Source: Macrostomum hystrix (lineage: Eukaryota > Animalia > Platyhelminthes). Taken from it: DNA of 64,000 bases. The stretch covers positions 930,001 through 994,000 of the forward strand of contig CATNEN010000035.1 in assembly GCA_950097015.1 (NCBI GenBank), read 5' to 3'. Positions 1 through 62,310 of this stretch are shown one piece after another; the stretch's first letter is position 1, and each line of letters opens with the position of its first letter. A program made the translations under genes and the position numbers. The notes under the pieces are model-generated. The model saw only the letters and a program-made list of their open reading frames with translations, did no database searches and had not been told where the DNA came from.

Positions 1-632
1 CATCGTTTTTTTGCTTGCAAATCTAGTTCCACCAGATTCCGATTGCCCTGCTAAAATCCGGCCAGATTCCGATGTCAATCCGATAACCCGTTTTTAGTGG
101 GGCGCTTCAGATCGAGTGACCGTCGCATCGCGTGCCTTAGGACAGGCGGCGTGGAAGACGACCGACCCGATGCTCGCAGCTGATCTGCGTTGATCGCCGG
201 GCTAGTTTCTGGCGTGGCAGCCGGTGGCTCGTCATTCGAAGGCTGCTCTACGTAGATGTGCAGCTTCGATAGCTGCTTTGCTTGTTTGCTGGAATTGTCG
301 CTTTGCTTGTAGCGATGCTCAACAGAAGCTCGCTGGTCGGTTCTCTTTGTAGGTGGAGCAGGAATTTTGCTCATTGCTATTAAAGAACAATAAACTAAAA
401 CACAAAGAAAAAATAAAACTAAAACTAAGTCTACTCTCACTACTGGTTAGTAGACTCTGGACGCGGGGTGGCAAACCGGTTAGACCGGCCTGCCAAACGG
501 TGTGGATAAAAAGAAACCTATAGGTCACAGGTGTTTTTGATTAAAGTACAATTTGTGAATACAGGCTGAGTTGGGCTGGGACACAGGTGCACGTGAGCAA
601 AGTACGCCTGAGATGTTATTCAATTATTAATA
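1..632 (-). mobile_element. 5' end (5' UTR plus ORF1 N-terminus) of a LINE-like element, copy A of the family at 5023-8051; runs off the window start
   Basis: Reverse complement of about 75-625 aligns with about 5053-5560. The peptide from ATG 374-372, MSKIPAPPTKRTDQRASVEHRYKQSD...SSSTPPVLRHAMRRSL, matches MS*LPAPQTKKCDQRPSIEHRYRQND...SSSTPPVLRHANRRSL of copy B. It begins directly after U2 nt 9-23 (633-647). Confidence 0.7.
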
Positions 633-647
633 AGCCAATAAGGCCGA
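633..647 (-). other. U2 snRNA nt 9-23 fragment (TCGGCCTTATTGGCT) at the 5' junction of LINE copy A
   Basis: 15/15 identity to nt 9-23 of the U2 gene at 1532-1715. Confidence 0.75.
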
Positions 648-1047
648 CGGGCCTCGGTGACCATCGACTGCTTTCGCCCGCTCGGCTTCGGTCTTTGGCC
701 TGCACCTGGCGGCGTGGATGTTGCGGGCGCGTCCTGTGGCGAATTCTGCGCCGCATCTATCGCATTTGTAGTCTCCGCCGAGGGGGCCTTCCTGCGCTAG
801 GCGGTTCTGCTGGCCAGGAGCAGCTGGGCAGGTGCTGATGTGTCTAGCCAGCCTGGCGAAGGTCGCTCTGCAGTGGGGACAACGATGCTGGCCGTCCATT
901 GCGCTAGCCGCCCGGTCGGCGCCAGTGATGTCTCCGGCTTGGAGGCGGCGCTCTCGACAGGCTTTGAGGTGGCGTGGTAATCCTTTGACGATGAGGAGCT
1001 TTCCACAGGCTGGGCAGGCGGTGCGCGTTGTTTGGCTGTTGGGTTGC
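648..1047 (-). pseudogene. Truncated ORF fragment with three tandem CxxC...HxxxC zinc fingers, resembling an R2/NeSL/Utopia-group N-terminus
   Basis: The frame is open from about 1047 to 627 and contains CPACGKLLIVKGLPRHLKAC, CPHCRATFARLARHISTC and CDRCGAEFATGRARNIHAARC. It is GC-rich like the Utopia fragments nearby. The family assignment is an inference. Confidence 0.55.
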
Positions 1048-1531
1048 TAGTCTCTCATACTATGTAAGATACACTCATACTCAGTTAAGTTCAGTACAGC
1101 TGTGAACTACCCTGCTAGTCTGTATGTATAAATATAATACAGATTCTGCAATATGTTTTTTGTCTTCGCATGTATTTTAGCATTGTTTATAATATTTAGT
1201 TTGCGTTTACCATATCATTTGAGTTTTTGTGATTAAATTAAGTTCTATTTTTATTATAATGATACATTTTTGTAAGTTTATTAATAGTTTTATTCATAAG
1301 TTGCGCAAGCAATTTTATTATTTTATATAATGTTCTACTTTTGTTCGCTGAATACTCGTATTTAATTTACTGCTCAGACAAGTAAACATATTTTACTAAT
1401 TAATGCGTAGGCTTGATTATAAGCGCACGGATTGCGTTTCGTGAGTGCGTGTAGCTTCTGAGTGAAATAAAGATAGGCGGTTGACAATAATTCTCTCACC
1501 TAGACTTATTTTTGCATTTCTTTTGATGCGC

Positions 1532-1715
1532 AGATCCTTGCTGTACTGCAGCGCAAGGCCTACGCGTGGACCAGGTCGTGTGAACACGATGCACTGGCCC
1601 GATTCCACAAAAACTGGATTAATAACGTAGTAGACCAATGGTCTACGTTTGAGGTATTAATCTCAAAAGAACAGAAACTACACTTTGATCTTAGCCAATA
1701 AGGCCGAGAAGCGAT
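1532..1715 (-). ncRNA. U2: U2 spliceosomal snRNA gene, full length (about 184 nt), variant
   Basis: Minus strand reads ATCGCTTCTCGGCCTTATTGGCTAAGATCAAAGTGTAGTTTCTGTTCTT, the conserved U2 5' end. Stem IIa is TTTGAG/CTCAAA, stem IIb is GTAGACC/GGTCTAC, the Sm-like site is AGTTTTTG, stem III is GGGCCAG/CTGGTCC, and stem IV is CCTTGC/GCAAGG with a CTGCAGTA loop. Confidence 0.93.
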
Positions 1716-2780: not shown

Positions 2781-3739
2781 TTTGGGAACTATACAGATTT
2801 AAGAGAAGGGATGATTACGCAACAGGAATGAAAGCAAGCTCGCACGACGTCAAGGGATGACTATGGGAAATTCTCATAAGCCAATAGAAAACGAGAACCA
2901 AGGAATTGTAGGCAAGCCGAATACAAGAACTAAGGGTCTTCCAAAAGAGCCAGTAAGATTTCAAGAAGCCTCCAGCCAACCAATTGGGAGTCGACAGCCC
3001 CTAGTTTTGTCATCTATATAAACAAGAACAGCAGGTGGGCAAATGTCAACTGTCCGTTCGTCTTGAACCTCCCCTATTAATTGTGTGTATTACATTCCAA
3101 TTGCCGTCATGGCCGAGCAAGACATATTAGACCCCGACAAATTCGATAGATTGTTATAAGCAGTGACCATAGATCTATCCCCATTCAGCTCCAATGCTGA
3201 GAGTAACCCAGCAGAGCAAATTATAATAGTCTCTCAGGCAGAAGTCCCAGCAGAGAGTGAAATTGTGGAAATCATAGACGACCAAGAGAACGAAGCCCCA
3301 CTCCGGCAGCAAACGGCCCCCCGGCTAGCCAATGTAAGTAGCCGACTAGCTACTTACATCGGAGGACCGCACAAGAGGCCAGCATCGAGTTCGCGATTGC
3401 ACGTCCCGGTAGATCCCGGAAAACGCTGTAGGATCCTAGAGGACCAGGCGGAGATGGAGGTACCAACCTCTGAATCAGTGCTCAGCCGTCAACCGGTGGG
3501 CTCTAAACCCTCAATATCAATCGCCATCCCAGAGGCTTCAGTTCCGAAACACCGGTCAAATCGAACGTATTGTAGGCCTATAGCGCCAAAACCAGCACCA
3601 GCCCCGCAGCCGGCTGTTAAGGAAGGCAGACCGCGATATGCTCGCATTCAATCAAGACCGCCGCGGCAGCCCTCACAGCCGCAGCAATCACTGTCGCAAC
3701 CCTCGCAGACGAAGCTCGGCAACCCAAGGCGCAAACTGC

Positions 3740-4852
3740 AAGGGCATCAGAGAGCGGAGCTGGGCTACGACGAGCGCGCACGCCAAATCCTTCGCCGCAT
3801 TGTCTACCTTCCGACGCAGTCGTCGACAGACTACCTTTACGCCGACAGATGCCACGGCGGCCTTGGCTTGTCAACTGCGAAGGAGGAGGCAGCCGTCCAG
3901 AAGGTCACCGAGGCCGTCAGGCGACTCTGCTGCACTGACGCCGCGCTCAGAGAACTGGCCTGGGCCGAACTGCGCGGCCTCGTCCAACGCCGCCTACGGC
4001 TACGGGCTGCACCCGTCCGACCTCGCGACGTCGCCGACTTCCTAAATGGGGCACCACTTCCTCCCAGCGGGGAAACGGCCAGCTGGTGGTTCCAAGTCCG
4101 CCACGCCACCCGCGAAGTGCTCCACACGACCGGCTGCGCTTCACCATCAGCAACGACTGGATGGCCAGTCTGGAGTGGCGCGACCCGCTGTCAGGAACAA
4201 CTCAGCGTTGCGATGGAGCGGCAGCAACAACCCGAAGGCTTCACCAGGCGGTCAGGGCAGCGCACACAGCCGCCTGGCGGAGGTGCCACTCCGATTTGCC
4301 GATTTGCTACGACAGCCACGCACATCGGCAGCCACACCTGGCTGTTCAACAGCACCGGCATGCGCGCCTGTGACTGCGCGCTGCAGGCCTGCGCGAGCGT
4401 GACATCCGGCACCTCCAACGTCGACTGGCGCTTCACTGCATCCACTGGAGCCGCAACACGTGGGTGGAGCACTGCACCGGCGCGCCTCAAATCCACTGAT
4501 TTTGCGCCGAACTCCGCCAGACTCTGCAAATCTCAGCCCCCTCCGTTTTACTATTACCTCTTTTGTTTTTCCTCCAGTCTTCCTTTTTGATTATCTTCGC
4601 TTTTTTAGAAGTTCAGGCACTCTGTTAGCATTCTGTTTTAATAGCATTTAACTGTTTTAACTGCTTAACTGTTTTAATTGCATGCATCTCAATGCTTCAC
4701 TGTTTTACGCATCCTGCGAACCCGTTTTTAGCTACTCTCAGTAGCATCTTTGGGCTCCTGGCCAATTTTACCGCTTATGCCGCAATCGTGTTTTAATACT
4801 TCAATATATTGCCTGACCGTCAGATACTCGGCTGACGGGCAGGGACTTTCGC
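3740..4852 (+). mobile_element. Utopia-like (RLE, NeSL/R2 group) non-LTR retrotransposon 3' part, internally deleted, 3' end joined to U2 nt 41
   Basis: RT thumb region LPTQSSTDYLYADRCHGGLGL, then LHQAVRAAHTAAWRR. The C-terminus in a shifted frame is GLRERDIRHLQRRLALHCIHWSRNTWVEHCTGAPQIH* (stop about 4499). The 3' UTR ends in a stem-loop (4812-4843). The CCHC knuckle and PD..D nuclease motif are not seen. Confidence 0.8.
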
Positions 4853-4924
4853 TCTGTTCTTTTGAGATTCATACCTCAAACGTAGACCATTGGTCTATTA
4901 CGTTATTAATCCAGTTTTTGTGGA
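4853..4924 (+). pseudogene. U2: U2 snRNA nt 41-112 fragment (downstream half of a disrupted U2 target)
   Basis: 70/72 identity to the U2 gene at 1532-1715, starting exactly at TCTGTTCTT. Confidence 0.9.
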
Positions 4925-5000
4925 CACCCTAATTGATCTTAGCCAATAAGGCCAAGAAACGACACCCTAATTGATCTCAACCAATGAGACTAAAAAACGG
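4925..5000 (-). repeat. Two tandem 38-nt units derived from U2 nt 1-31
   Basis: Minus strand unit GTCGTTTCTTGGCCTTATTGGCTAAGATCAATTAGGGT; the second unit is more degenerate. Confidence 0.75.
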
Positions 5001-5022
5001 CACCTTTTCGGCCTGATTGGCT

Positions 5023-8000
5023 TCTCTGCACAGACCTCTGCCAGTTTTTTATCTGAATAGCGATCTCTCACGCGCACTTTGCTCACGTACATCTGAGCCC
5101 TAGCCCAACTCAACTCCTGCGTTCTCTAATAGCTATTTTATTCTCACACACCTGTGGCTTTTAGTTTAACTCCATACCCTTGTCCGGACTGTCTAACCGG
5201 TCTGCCACCCCGCGTGCAGAGACTACAAATCAGTAGTGAGCATAGATTTAGTTAGAGGTTTTATTTACATTTTTCTTTGTGATTTTGTTTATAGTTGTTT
5301 ATTAGCAATGAGCTAGCTACCTGCTCCTCAGACAAAGAAATGTGACCAACGCCCATCGATCGAGCACCGATATCGCCAAAATGACATCCAGGTAAACAAC
5401 TGCCTGTGAAACTCCAGGTGCAGACTGAACAACCTACTACGGAGGTCTTAACGACACCTGACTCAAGCCCTGCTCTGGCCTCTGGTCCATTCAGGCAGTC
5501 ATCTAGATCATCATCCACTCCTCCAGTTCTCCGACACGCCAACCGCAGATCATTGGAGCCAATTAAAGTAGACACTCCTGACGGTCTGGGAACTACCGAA
5601 AGACTGCTGCGTCCCGCTAGCAGCCAGATAGACGGTCCCTACAGCTGCCGGATCACCAAGCTGCCGAATCCGAAACGGATATGGAGGCGGATGCTAAAGC
5701 TATTGCTAGTTCAGCATATCCATAACTCACCTGTGACGTCACTGACGCGAAATTTAGCAACCACGAAGGTGACTGCCTAGTGAACTATTATCCTAAACTC
5801 CTAGCTGATCAAGCAGACCTACTGTACCAGCGACTAGTCCGTGATGTCCTGCCGCTCGCCTTTAGACATCGCCCACAAGAACAGCGGCTTGTCTACTGGA
5901 TTGGGCCACAATATACATACTCCAAAGTCCCACTTGTACAAAATGACCTTTGGCCTGAAGTGGTCAAGGACATCGCCAACAGTCTGAACAACGAAGCGAG
6001 GTTGAATCTACCGGATTTTAAAAGTTGCCTATTAAACTTATAGCAGTCTGCTGATGACAACATACCAATTATCATGCTGACAATGAGCCGGAGCTGGGCG
6101 AGGATCCGGTCATAACCACCATTTCACTTGGCGCACTCAGAAGCTTTATGATGAAGACCAAATCAGACCGTGTTCTATGGGGCTTCCCAGCACTGCCTGG
6201 ATCACTCATCGTCATGGCTGGTGCCTGCCAGCGTAAACTACTCCACTCGGTACCTGCAGTCACCGATCAGGAAGGTTTAAGAATCTCGCTGACCTTCAGG
6301 CGTACTGAAGCTATCACTAGGCCTCCAAAAGGACCGGCCATAAACAGCATGAGCCCAATCATCCAGCCAGCGACGACATCTGAGCGACCAGGCAGTGGTG
6401 GGGCGGACTCCGGCCCTGCCGCACCTGGCAGCTCTGGCAAGTCCAATCAACCAGCTCAGCAGCAACAGCGCCAAGTTCCGACGACCAAGCCCAAGACCTA
6501 TGCCAGCACTGCAGCCAGGCCGAGGAAGCCACCGGCTGCCGTCTGCCCAGCTGTTTTCGAGATGGACGGGCAAGGTGCACAAAACCACATTGGCTTCCTA
6601 CAATGGCTCTCCGCAAATTTTTCTGGCGCTGCCAGGGCCGTGAACACGAAGCCTCAGTCAGCCTAATATGGCTTCCTTAGTCTTTCCAGCCTCAGAGAGA
6701 GACCACAATGTCTTTCTCGATGGGCCTCTTCGCGAGCCGAACTTCCATGGCCTGCCAGTCAACCGTTGACAAGCCAGATCAAGGCAGCTAGATGCCAGGC
6801 GTGGTGTCGATGTGCCCATAATTGCCAGCAGGACTGCCACCGTCGTCGTCAAAGACGGTGACCTGGAAGTCAGACCTGCCGAGTTCTTGGACCTACTCAA
6901 AGCCGCATCGGCCTGAAGGTGTCAGTTGCCCAGAGAATTGTGTCCAAAACAACTGGCCAGCCTACAAGATTAATGCGCATTTTCGGCGATGACATCCAGA
7001 TTGCCACCAGCTGAAGCGAGATTAGCGCGCGTGCCAATGATTGCCGACCGAATTCGAGACCTCAACATCAGCTGGCTGGCCAAAGCTCGTGCTGCTCATC
7101 TGCACGACTTTGAGCTTGAACCGCCAATCCCAAGGGGGAACAAAAGACTTCCAATGCCGGTTTTAAATATCCTTTGGACCGTCCTAAAGCGAAGAGAAGC
7201 AAATAGGCAAGCCAATCCCTAGCGAATGGCAATGGGCATTGCTAATTTTTAATAAATCAATCTAATGATTATTGAACTCTTAACGTGATGCGGAATTGGA
7301 CTGGCAGGGTCTTGCAATGCTGAGCCAATACTGTCCCGTGCCCATAAACTAGCCAGAACCCTAAAAAATTTGTACTTTACCTTTCCAGTTCCGACCCATT
7401 GTTAGGTAAACTGCCAGACACCCACCACCCCGCCTATTTTCTATAGCCTACTCTTGCCAAAAAATGTGACCCCCCAGCGGCTCTAAGCCTATTCATTTTC
7501 TTTGTAAATCACTTAGAGAACCTCCTCCCCTGCCCTCTAAAGTGACAATTAGAACTGTACTTCAGACCCAATTATGATTCAGCAAAATAATAAATCAACA
7601 AGCCCAAGCCGATACACCAACCCTAATCTAGTTCAAACTTGAAATCTTTTCAAATTAAAACTAGAAAACTCTTCTCACCCCAATATCACCTACTTGCAGT
7701 AAGCTGGTAAGAAGCTTGCCAAATTTATAAATATTATAAATAAAAAATATTATAGCTTGATAAATGCATTTCTTTTTATTCTCAATGCCTACCAACACAT
7801 CCACATTGCATGCTTTTAGATTCTCCCTGTTTTATTTGATCCCTCTTTGTGACGGATCCCCTTCTTGATTTTATATTCCCATGCAATGCCAATATTTATT
7901 TTATTTTTAGATTCTCTAAATATTTTGTTACAATAAAATTCGCGAACTTAGCAAATAATGAATATTTTTAAATGCCGAAATAGACAAAGCAGCTGCGGTA

Positions 8001-8051
8001 GAGCACCTCACGCGGGGCAACTTTGCCCTATCGTGCAATCATCAATCATCA
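5023..8051 (+). mobile_element. Internally deleted LINE (Jockey/I-group-like) with an AlkB-containing ORF1, flanked by U2 nt 9-23 on both sides (copy B)
   Basis: ORF1 starts at ATG 5308 and is homologous to copy A. It contains AlkB at 5726-6303, a KTYASTAARP linker and Pre_C2HC-like TVVVKDGDLEVRPAEFLDLLK..GLKVSVAQRIVSKTTGQPTRLMRIF. An ORF2-end-like RLARVPMIADRIRDLNISWLAKAR runs to stop 7222. The 3' UTR ends in an (ATC)n-like tail. Flanks are TCGGCCTGATTGGCT (5008-5022) and TCGGCCTTAGTGGCTAAGATCA (8052-8073). Confidence 0.65.
5726..6303 (+). pseudogene. AlkB-family 2OG-Fe(II) dioxygenase domain (ALKBH2/ALKBH3-like), inactivated by a stop and a frameshift
   Basis: CLVNYYPKLLADQADLLYQRL...YTYS...FKSCLLNL*QSADDNIP[+2 nt]YHADNEPELGEDP...SLG...GSLIVMAG..Q..LLHSVP...RISLTFR, with HxD...H and RxxxxxR motifs. 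TAG at 6041-6043. Confidence 0.9.
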
Positions 8052-8189
8052 TCGGCCTTAGTGGCTAAGATCATGTGGTGCCTTTGCACACAAATACGAG
8101 AGTCTAAATCGTTGGTTGGTTGTTTGTAATTAGAACTAGTGAAAATGAGTATCACGCAGGTATCACGAGGCAGCTGGCCGAATCCATGC

Positions 8190-8460
8190 CCAACGCCCTA
8201 GCAACGATCTGTGTTGGCGCCCTCGGTGCCTGGTCGCCGCATAACAACACCATCCTGCGCGCCACCGGCCCACGCGAGAGCACCATCCGCGAGCTTCAAT
8301 GCCATCTGGCGCTCCATTGCATCCATTGCAGCCGCAACACCTGGGTGGAGCACTGCTCTGGCTCGCCTCAGGTTTTCTAACTGGTGCGACTTCAGCCAGT
8401 CTGGCCCGTTCTGCATTGAACTTCGGCCGCGACTGTGCTATTCAATGCCTACGCAATATA
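8190..8460 (+). mobile_element. Second, diverged Utopia-like C-terminal fragment plus partial 3' UTR
   Basis: ICVGALGAWSPHNNTILRATGPRESTIRELQCHLALHCIHCSRNTWVEHCSGSPQVF*, homologous to the C-terminus at 4380-4499. Confidence 0.8.
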
Positions 8461-8463
8461 GCC

Positions 8464-8517
8464 GATCTTAGCCAATAAGGCCGAGAAACGACACCCTAAT
8501 GCATCTCAGCCAATAAT
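8464..8517 (-). repeat. U2-5'-derived tandem block, homologous to 4933-4995
   Basis: GATCTTAGCCAATAAGGCCGAGAAACGACACCCTAATGCATCTCAGCCAATAA. Confidence 0.75.
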
Positions 8518-8521
8518 GCTG

Positions 8522-8966
8522 ATGACCTTTGGCCTGAAGTGGTCAAGGACATCGCCAACAGTCTGAACAACGAAGCCGAGGTTGAATCTACCGGATTTCA
8601 ACAGTTGCCTATTAAACCTTTACCAGTCTGCTGACGACAATATACCTTATCATGCTGACAATGAGCCGGAGCTAGGCGAGGATCCGGTCATAACCACCAT
8701 CTCACTTGGCGCACTCAGAAGCTTTATGATGAAGACCAAATCAGACCGTGTTCTATGGGGCTTCCCAGCACTGCCTGGATCACTCATCGTCATGGCTGGT
8801 GCCTGCCAGCGTAAACTACTCCACTCGGTACCTGCAGTCACCGATCAGGAAGGTTTAAGAATCTCGCTGACCTTCAGGCGTACTGAAGTCATCACAAGGC
8901 CTCCAAAAGGACCGGCCATAGACAGCATGAGCCCAGTCGTCCAGCCAGCGGCGACATCTGAGCGAC
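8522..8966 (+). pseudogene. Duplicated AlkB catalytic core (near-identical to 5943-6388), open frame, N-terminus missing
   Basis: FNSCLLNLYQSADDNIPYHADNEPELGEDP...LLHSVPAV...RISLTFRR. It lacks the stop and frameshift of the first copy. Confidence 0.88.
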
Positions 8967-9170
8967 GTCAGCTCGGCACCGGCAATCTGTCAGACGACGT
9001 CGGCATGACCAGGATGAAAATTGTAGCTCGGACCATCGTCTGGTGGCCAGGGATGGATGTCGACATCGAGAACGTCGCCAGCAGCTGCTAGGCCTGCCAG
9101 TCCGTGAAGCTGCAGCCGGTGCTGGCCCCACTGCGCCCATGGGTCTGGCCGGACCAACCCTGCGACCGCC
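8967..9170 (+). mobile_element. Gypsy integrase zinc-binding region fragment (left part)
   Basis: GMTRMKIVARTIVWWPGMDVDIENVASSC*ACQSVKLQPVLAPLRPWVWPDQPCDR. Confidence 0.85.
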
Positions 9171-9184
9171 CGCCTGACCGCCTT

Positions 9185-9252
9185 ACCCGTCAAACGGAGC
9201 TCACTTAACGCGGGGACGGGTGTCACAGACGCGGTCTGTGCCAAATGCTACG
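9185..9252 (+). ncRNA. Predicted HDV-like self-cleaving ribozyme (L1Tc/Ingi type) at the element 5' end
   Basis: P1 ACCCGTC/GACGGGT (9185-91/9215-21), P2 CGGAGC/GCTACG (5 of 6 pairs), P3 TCA/CGG (one mismatch) around loop CTTAACG, P4 CACAGAC/GTCTGTG, J4/2 CCAAAT. Folded by eye. Confidence 0.55.
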
Positions 9253-10503
9253 GTACCCCAGATGTCGCCCCGATGTCCGCACCCCCACCCGCCGGCGGGG
9301 TTTTGGGTGGGTGGCAGGCCAACCCCGACTGGTCTCGCCGCCGGCTTCTGTTGTCGGGGGATGTAGAGCCGAACCCTAGTCCGGTCCAAGCCGATATCCG
9401 CGTCCTGCAGTTGAATCTCAACGGGCTGCAGGCGCGACCGGCACTCGAACGGCTGCTGGAGGAGCACAAGATCGACATAGCCCTCCTGCAGGAGTCCAAC
9501 CTAACCTAGAATGAGTCCACACCGAAGTTCCGCGGCTACACAGACCATCGCTGCGACCGGGTCTGGTGCCAGCAGTATCACTTCGACCGCGAGGCCCTGC
9601 TGGTGAGTACCCACCCCGTTGAGAACACCGAGGCCTTCCGGAACACTGTTCAGCTCCAGGTCGGCGGGCAGACGATTAGTTGCCGGAAGGAGGTGCGCAT
9701 CCTGGGGGTGTCCGTTGACTCCCAGGTCACCTTCGCCGAGCAGGCCCGCCGCGCGCTGGCTGCCATGCGGAGCCGTCTCATCGCCCTGCGAGCCGTGGCT
9801 TCCCGCCGGTGGGGAGCCGACGCGGAAATGCTTCATCGGCTCTTCATCGCCAGGGCCGCCCTCCGTCGCCAGGGACGGGCTGCCGAATTGGCCGAGTAAA
9901 ACATTGGCCGAGGGAAACCATCACATAAAAGTAATGGTTTCCCGATGGATATTCAGATTGATATTCGATGAATCAAAATTCTATAAAATTAAACAAACTC
10001 GGAGTGTCGACACTTTATATTCTCCATACAGCAACCGAGATATGATACCGTGACAAATTTCTACCAAATTGGACTGGTAGTTTCGGAGATAATCACCTGT
10101 ACGTGGTGCTCGCCATCTCTGTAATGTACCGGCTGGTACCGGCGGACCACCCCATAGGCTTTGCGGCGGAGCACAGCTCATCCACCGGCCAGACTGGCCG
10201 CGGGCGGCCGAGGTGGCGCTGTACCAGCTTCGGGCGAACCGTGCGCCCTTCCTGCAGGCCACCCGGCATCGCTGGGGCCGCGCCCCAACCGTTGCCTGCC
10301 CGCACTGCAATGCCCCCAAAGAGGACACCTGGCACTTCCTGTTCGACTGCCCCAGGTGGGCGGAGGAGCGCCGGATTCACCTCCCAGGGGCCATCAACCG
10401 TTCTATGTCCCCGCTGCAGGAGGACCCAGAAGGGGTGCGGACCTTCGTCGAGGTGTCGGGTGCGCTGGCGCGCCCACCGTATGCCTAGCGAGGGATCCGA
10501 ACC

Positions 10504-12010: not shown

Positions 12011-12175
12011 TTTTCGGCCTAGTTGGCTAAGATGAATAGTTGGTGTCGCTTTTTCAGCCTTTGAAGTGTATACAGCTTACAGCTGAAAGGTTAGCCCACA
12101 GCATAATTCTCGTCAAGATTTGACTTGCGCTACTCGTCCTTAAGCTAGGATCAATGGTTGGTGTGGCTTTGTGGC
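12011..12175 (+). repeat. Degenerate U2-5'-derived units
   Basis: TTTTCGGCCTAGTTGGCTAAGATGAATAGTTGGTGTCGCTTTTTCAGCCTT and AAGCTAGGATCAATGGTTGGTGTGGCTTT. Confidence 0.6.
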
Positions 12176-62138: not shown

Positions 62139-62310
62139 TGATCTTAAACAATAATACTGAGAAGAGGCATGATCTTTATCCACTAAGGCTTAGAAACAAC
62201 ATGACCTAATGATCTTAAACAATAATGCCGAGAAGCGAGATAACAAGATGTTTTTAGCTAGTCGAGAAAGAAGAGAAGCGACACCAACCATTGATCTTAA
62301 TAACTACTAA
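62139..62310 (-). repeat. Cluster of degenerate U2-5'-derived units
   Basis: Minus strand has TCGCTTCTCGGCATTATTGTTTAAGATCA, GTTTCTAAGCCTTAGTGGATAAAGATCA, CTTCTCAGTATTATTGTTTAAGATCA and TAAGATCAATGGTTGGTGTCGCTTCTC. Confidence 0.65.

Follow-up and report, generated by a model that had tools for sequence, protein, structure and literature searches.

Is there, in the gene for the U2 small nuclear RNA (snRNA), a landing site for retrotransposons in stem-loop I, apart from the position where the known U2 elements insert? The question is raised by a window of 64,000 nucleotides (nt) of the flatworm Macrostomum hystrix (C35:930001-994000, the whole stretch of DNA analyzed here). In it, two diverged copies of a long interspersed nuclear element (LINE), called below A and B, both begin directly after nt 23 of a U2 sequence (633-647 on the minus strand and 5008-5022 on the plus strand). 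The initial annotation had seen in these two 5′ ends a LINE family that targets U2, and the genome searched for other copies comprises 220 Mb. The junction shared by the two copies was confirmed. By a small measure, we lean to the view that the endonuclease of this lineage recognizes the sequence of U2 stem-loop I and has used it at least twice, and we regard strict U2 specificity as a trait of the family as plausible but doubtful. The features on which the argument turns are the following.

1-632, minus strand: 5′ part of copy A (5′ untranslated region, 5′UTR, and start of the first open reading frame, ORF1), continuing upstream of the window
633-647, minus strand: U2 nt 9-23 (15/15), directly 5′ of copy A
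1521-1715, minus strand: intact U2 snRNA gene (Rfam, 147 bits), with a box upstream resembling a proximal sequence element (PSE)
5008-5022, plus strand: 5′ half of the 15-bp target duplication of copy B, U2 nt 9-23 (14/15)
5023-5307, plus strand: 5′UTR of copy B, with the first ~22 nt extra relative to copy A
5308-6990, plus strand: ORF1 of copy B, with several stops and frame shifts (65-86% to the ORF1 of A by tblastn)
about 5780-6300, plus strand: AlkB (2OG-FeII_Oxy_2) domain in the ORF1 of copy B, from Pfam
7019-7222, plus strand: remnant of the ORF2 of copy B, the last ~67 codons (91% amino acid identity to the reverse transcriptase, RT, ORF of a relative on C1)
7223-8051, plus strand: 3′UTR of copy B (~830 bp), with a AATCATCA-type tail at its end
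8052-8085, plus strand: 3′ half of the duplication (8052-8066, 14/15) and U2-derived unit
8522-8966, plus strand: copy D, a local duplicate of B that covers a fragment of the AlkB region (96% to B 5943-6388)

Nucleotides 9-23 of the U2 of this species are TCGGCCTTATTGGCT. The exact 15-mer occurs seven times genome-wide; 30 sites are found when one mismatch is allowed, and this element follows directly only at A and B. With up to three mismatches, the window itself contains nine occurrences, against 1.4 expected, and none of 100 shuffles reaches nine. At the other end of copy B, the ATC-type tail runs into U2 nt 9-30 (8052-8073) with 21 of 22 positions matching, a score reached by none of 5000 shuffles. 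The 15-bp target duplication proposed by the initial annotation is real. Its two halves differ at two of 15 positions, and each agrees with U2 at 14 of 15. Two relatives of B have duplications of 14 and 10 bp, and 15 bp is therefore a normal size for such elements. Around both halves, the sequence is consistent with a single unit of a minisatellite derived from U2 (about nt 2-39).

The element itself is an APE-type LINE (with an apurinic/apyrimidinic-like endonuclease). The assignment follows from the domain content of its full-length relatives, in which ORF1 contains the AlkB domain, a C-terminal part, and three CCHC knuckles, and ORF2 contains Exo_endo_phos_2 and RVT_1; the suggestion of an endonuclease-RT LINE is in this way borne out. 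In the Pfam domain content of these relatives, no restriction-like endonuclease (RLE) was found. Copy B is a dead, stop-ridden member. In its ORF1, the AlkB domain is followed by the C-terminal part that is common to copy A, but no CCHC knuckles or endonuclease are left and the RT is largely gone; B has therefore undergone an internal deletion of about 4 kb. The PF13532 match has a value of 2.8e-20 in the ORF1 of A and 2.4e-16 in copy D, and is weak in B. An origin of the AlkB stretch as a host gene, or as a retrocopy of a gene on C3, was rejected, since the stretch on C3 proved to be one more decayed copy and the genome has 84 related stretches of LINE ORF1. Likewise, copy B is not a single uniform repeat, since its parts have different genomic distributions and the element is internally deleted.

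How far do A and B count as two events? They can be aligned from about 8-28 nt past the junction through the 5′UTR and the start of ORF1, with 74% identity over 5′UTR positions 44-377, and they differ from the first base past the junction. In codons 1-260 of ORF1, the proportion of silent differences (pS) is 0.69-0.75, which is silent-site saturation, with a ratio of nonsynonymous to synonymous divergence (dN/dS) of 0.05-0.11. Divergence under purifying selection implies separate replicating lineages and, therefore, two insertions at the same nucleotide. A and B are separate insertions at one U2 position and not local duplicates. A second, anciently diverged member with the identical 5′ junction argues in turn for a recognized site and not a chance landing. 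One could still suppose that a LINE fell by chance into a repeat-rich U2 cluster and that local duplication or rearrangement mimics recurrence. The region is a mosaic of nested, rearranged fragments, with copy D as an example, and the order of unit and element is repeated on C3. In addition, A and B are close in codons 260-450 (dS about 0.2), which suggests an exchange between them later than their split. On the other hand, the 5′ halves, saturated at silent sites, share the junction to the nucleotide, and the rarity of the exact 15-mer in the genome speaks in the same sense. A landing without any targeting is hardly credible.

For the preferred reading, sequence recognition in stem-loop I, the entry of copy B can be pictured as target-primed reverse transcription. 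A bottom-strand nick at U2 nt 8/9 would let the ATC-type tail of the RNA pair with the TC of the target. A top-strand cut after nt 23 would then give the 15-bp duplication. The target would have been a unit of the U2-derived minisatellite beside real U2 genes. Families of the same LINE group that are plainly tied to one site, in U5 genes and in the 5S spacer (both described below), speak for this reading, as do the restriction of all matches to the lineage's 5′ part to U2 clusters and the best match of the U2 site in the 5S unit, which coincides with a LINE insertion site.

A different account of the 15 bases comes from a LINE family homing to U5 snRNA genes. This family belongs to the same group as B (ORF1 46-47%, RT about 65%) and likewise uses one fixed snRNA position, but the target is U5, with the junction at about nt 48/49. 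The upstream gene is left whole and the copies carry the 3′ part of U5 in head-to-tail arrays, whereas a U2 insertion, with a duplication of just 15 bp, would disrupt the gene. A match to the ORF1 of the AlkB group lies within about 5 kb downstream at seven of the eight U5 genes, and in six loci (all those with the flank read) a LINE begins directly after the gene. Three U5 genes stand at the head of arrays and have, about 70-80 nt upstream, an snRNA promoter-like box (CACTACGAAAA.TAGG); the box upstream of the U2 gene of the window is common to other U2 and U5 genes. Four copies of the U5 family without a promoter box keep an entire U5 head that begins no more than about 3 nt from U5 +1. The 3′ junction of the family, AACAACA then AAGATTTCC, is identical in Macrostomum lignano, where a head-to-tail LINE array is again led by a U5 gene. 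That species alone provides database relatives of the ORF1 protein; the protein search in M. lignano returned only the U5 family, with no U2 nearby.

By analogy, a source copy sitting in a U2 gene could have been transcribed from the U2 start, and the 15 bases would be a leader carried by the RNA. Such a leader would account for the 15-mer of A standing without U2 upstream, and the dispersed U5-family copies that bear the whole U5 head without a promoter box provide a precedent. However, transcription from the U2 start predicts a leader with nt 1 as its first base, and both copies have nt 9 instead. The 3′ flank of B begins exactly at nt 9, as a staggered cut predicts, and the relatives make ordinary duplications, of 10-14 bp, of unrelated sequence. 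An RNA-borne leader is accordingly very unlikely.

The AlkB group has another specialized member. On C39 (12.72 Mb; C39:12719500-12726500), an AlkB-ORF1 LINE is present in the spacer of a 926-bp repeat of 5S ribosomal DNA (5S-rDNA), with its 5′ junction after GAAGACTCTCT (offsets in the C39 stretch: 674-792, 1600-1718, and 2206 onward). In an unrooted tree of the AlkB domain, with rows extracted using A as query, (A,E) and (B,D,C3) are united, with 92/93 support, in a clade sister to the 5S-spacer LINE; E is a third clade member on C39, and C3 stands for a copy on the contig of that name. LINEs specific for 5S are known, Mutsu among them. Beyond the sister relation of the ORF1s, the 5S-spacer LINE resembles B in that a copy of this spacer site is occupied by a relative of the 3′ end of B. 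It differs in its 5′UTR and in its target, which is spacer and not RNA-coding.

That relative, on C1, is 89% identical to the 3′ kilobase of B and has the same AATCATCA tail, besides its 14-bp duplication. The 5S-rDNA spacer copy on which it sits is 61 nt long and starts exactly at the insertion point of the other family in the 5S array. At C1:16.04 Mb, in fact, two LINEs (the relative of B and one upstream) both end on this 61-nt copy of the spacer site, outside any 5S array. A second relative, on C5, is 85% identical, with the 10-bp duplication at an unrelated site. Both flanks were also considered as U2 sequence and rejected: the C1 flank was borderline (p = 0.055) and proved to be 5S spacer, and a 10-mer match of the C5 flank to U2 nt 127-136 is the target duplication of the C5 copy itself.

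The lineage could then be at home in the 5S-rDNA spacer, with the U2 insertions as off-targets on a look-alike sequence (TCGG, pyrimidine-rich, TTA, TG, AAGA, TC). The two C1 LINEs ending on a spacer-site copy and the sister position of the 5S-spacer LINE agree with such a home. In addition, when U2 nt 5-34 are compared with the forward strand of the 926-bp 5S unit, they match best exactly where the 5S LINE is inserted, and both kinds of 3′ junction, U2 and 5S-spacer-like, lie 1-3 nt before CGG. But the motif similarity is statistically weak, none of the copies with an A/B-type ORF1 was seen in a 5S array, and two insertions at one rare U2 position are many for off-targets. We hold this home to be unlikely. 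In the reading that we prefer, with recognition of stem-loop I itself, U2 may be the main target or one of several look-alike sites.

The opposite extreme is a dedicated U2-specific family, with U2 nt 8/9-23/24 as its sole natural target; the C1 and C5 copies would then belong to separate families, with recombination as the source of the 3′ end of B. The genome-wide search that bears on this gave a divided answer. Matches to the first 578 bases come from A, B, and the C3 copy (a 5′-truncated and decayed member), and all lie within U2 clusters, on C35 and on C3, where a second cluster is found. The 3′ kilobase has its relatives at 5S-spacer-like and unrelated sites. The 5′ and 3′ parts do occur together in B, but elsewhere their distributions differ. 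A search with the whole element adds, in the U2 clusters, only D, besides relatives of the 3′ kilobase of B and of a repeat in its 3′UTR. The lineage members available are three partial copies. A junction common to two old lineages, and all copies with the lineage's 5′ part in U2 clusters on two contigs, would suit a dedicated family, as would the low copy number for a target of about four genes (cf. Utopia, PMC4640811). Against it, the tail and 3′UTR of B share 83-89% identity with the C1 and C5 copies, a closer match than that between A and B, and each of these copies has its own duplication of non-U2 sequence; none of the four full U2 genes found is interrupted, and E lies outside the U2 clusters. 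A dedicated U2 family is plausible, if doubtful.

Several of these observations, and some others, weigh also against U2 recognition as such. The 5′ junction after U2 nt 23 is shared by independent copies, A and B, in a sample of two, and one 3′ junction in U2 is available. No interruption at nt 23 was found in the four full U2 genes. Copy B entered a U2-derived repeat rather than a working gene, a caveat already raised by the initial annotation and now realized, the target being a minisatellite. Upstream of the 15-mer of A, U2 nt 1-8 were not found; 17 nt of unassigned filler (648-664) come before it and then a fragment of another element, resembling Utopia. The 3′ end of A was sought downstream and not found. 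Genomic distribution differs between the 5′ and 3′ parts of B, of which the closest 3′ relatives occupy 5S-spacer-like (C1) and unrelated (C5) sites. The clade member E is outside U2 clusters, with an uninformative 5′ end. Finally, the score for similarity between the U2 and 5S-spacer sites is not significant (73% of shuffles equal it).

Downstream, copy A is disrupted. Its intact 583-amino-acid (aa) ORF1 with the AlkB domain is found at C35:921153-922901, upstream of the window and beyond a foreign insert of ~7 kb. This ORF1 is followed by a piece of the Utopia-like RLE element in antisense orientation, behind which lies a U5-family fragment (RT and 3′UTR, 93.5%). The latter was tried as the 3′ end of A and rejected, its flank being not U2-like (p = 0.34); an Rfam scan of the 3′ flank of A and of a U5-family array gave no match. 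The insert that splits A contains an intact 636-aa ORF (C35:927102-929012, minus strand) without a Pfam match, which by eye looks transposase-like.

The stem-loop I site is set apart from those of the retrotransposons already described in U2, as had been claimed. Utopia elements are RLE-type retrotransposons of the non-LTR class (without long terminal repeats, LTRs) in U2 snRNA genes (Kojima and Jurka 2015, PMC4640811). Like the lineage of B, they are at home in U2 gene sequence and low in copy number, and some families reside in U2-derived satellites and not in genes (YURE, U2_sat in Ciona; PMC4640811). They differ in having a restriction-like (PD-D/ExK) endonuclease C-terminal to the RT and N-terminal zinc fingers where the relatives of B have an APE, and in having U2 from nt 39 downstream (PMC4640811), as opposed to junctions at nt 8/9 and 23/24 in B. 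Keno, a Tx1-clade LINE, is closer in type, as an APE-type LINE with a U2 target (Kojima and Fujiwara 2004, as cited in PMC4640811 and PMC4494074). According to these citing sources, it uses the site of Utopia and not stem-loop I. The lineage of B, with its AlkB ORF1 and, in relatives, three CCHC knuckles, is set apart from Keno by site and by domain content. Among the papers searched, none was found to describe a LINE at U2 nt 8/9-23/24.

Pieces of a Utopia-like element are present in the same loci as A and B, together with the U2-derived minisatellite:

662-1054, minus strand: 5′ fragment of the Utopia-like RLE element (C2H2 zinc-finger ORF), 92% to a copy on C3
3750-4852 (start approximate), plus strand: 3′ half of the Utopia-like RLE element (RT C-terminus, RLE, 3′UTR)
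4853-4924, plus strand: U2 nt 41-112, the canonical 3′ flank of Utopia, 97% to U2
4925-5004, minus strand: two inverted units of the U2-derived minisatellite (about U2 nt 2-39)
8145-8463, plus strand: second Utopia-like 3′ fragment (RLE C-terminus, short 3′UTR)
8464-8522, minus strand: two more inverted units of the minisatellite

The C3 copy of the Utopia-like element has U2 nt 5-39 before its 5′ end. This RLE element therefore occupies the canonical site (nt 39/41), stem-loop I is a different one, and two unrelated retroelements share the U2 clusters. The zinc-finger and RLE fragments of the window belong to this separate element and not to B.

Taken with the U5 and 5S-spacer families, the U2 insertions suggest a tentative history, which we rate as possible and below even chances. 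An APE-type AlkB LINE at stem-loop I would represent a third, independent origin of U2 targeting. It would have arisen as families of one flatworm LINE group, all with homes at small-RNA loci (the U5 gene, the 5S spacer, and U2), hopped between targets, perhaps via look-alike motifs. Site-specific LINEs are studied as natural safe-harbor integrators. Related families in one genus that use U5, the 5S spacer, and a new U2 position would form a compact system for the change of target by an APE, and RLE and APE retroelements on the same few U2 genes would allow a direct comparison. If the U2 insertions are off-targets on a look-alike, they would still define what the endonuclease reads.

The minisatellite, with units of about U2 nt 2-39, adjoins U2 genes in both orientations. 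Further units occur at 12014-12060, at about 62140-62300 (near 62.2 kb), and in the C3 cluster (4436-4517 of the C3 stretch). It resembles the U2_sat repeats of Ciona (PMC4640811). The unit span stops at the Utopia site, and the minisatellite may be a by-product of Utopia activity. Other Utopia-like pieces were seen at 2795-3700 of the C3 stretch and at 9027-9569 of a further fetched locus; all those seen are partial and, except for one weak match on C33, lie in U2 clusters. Around the U2 loci at C35:994641 and C1:22007041, no LINE protein matches were found.

Some minor features of the window can be added. Within the 3′UTR of B, 7216-7724 is a repeat of ~510 bp with 12 partial or full matches elsewhere (86-93%), and these matches lack the last 330 bp of the LINE; the repeat could represent a non-autonomous derivative, or else an element that the 3′UTR has captured. 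Before the 3′ half of the Utopia-like element, a 475-aa ORF is a fusion: its first ~190 codons (3163-3730, plus strand) match, at 71%, open frames of 523 aa on C39 and C2 and have no relation to the RT/RLE part after them. Copy D passes straight into an integrase H2C2 zinc-finger motif (8966-9091, plus strand), a fragment of an LTR retrotransposon. Farther on, an ORF at 9273-9509 (plus strand) has GDVEPNPSP, a 2A-like motif, just before the apparent start of another LINE's APE endonuclease domain.

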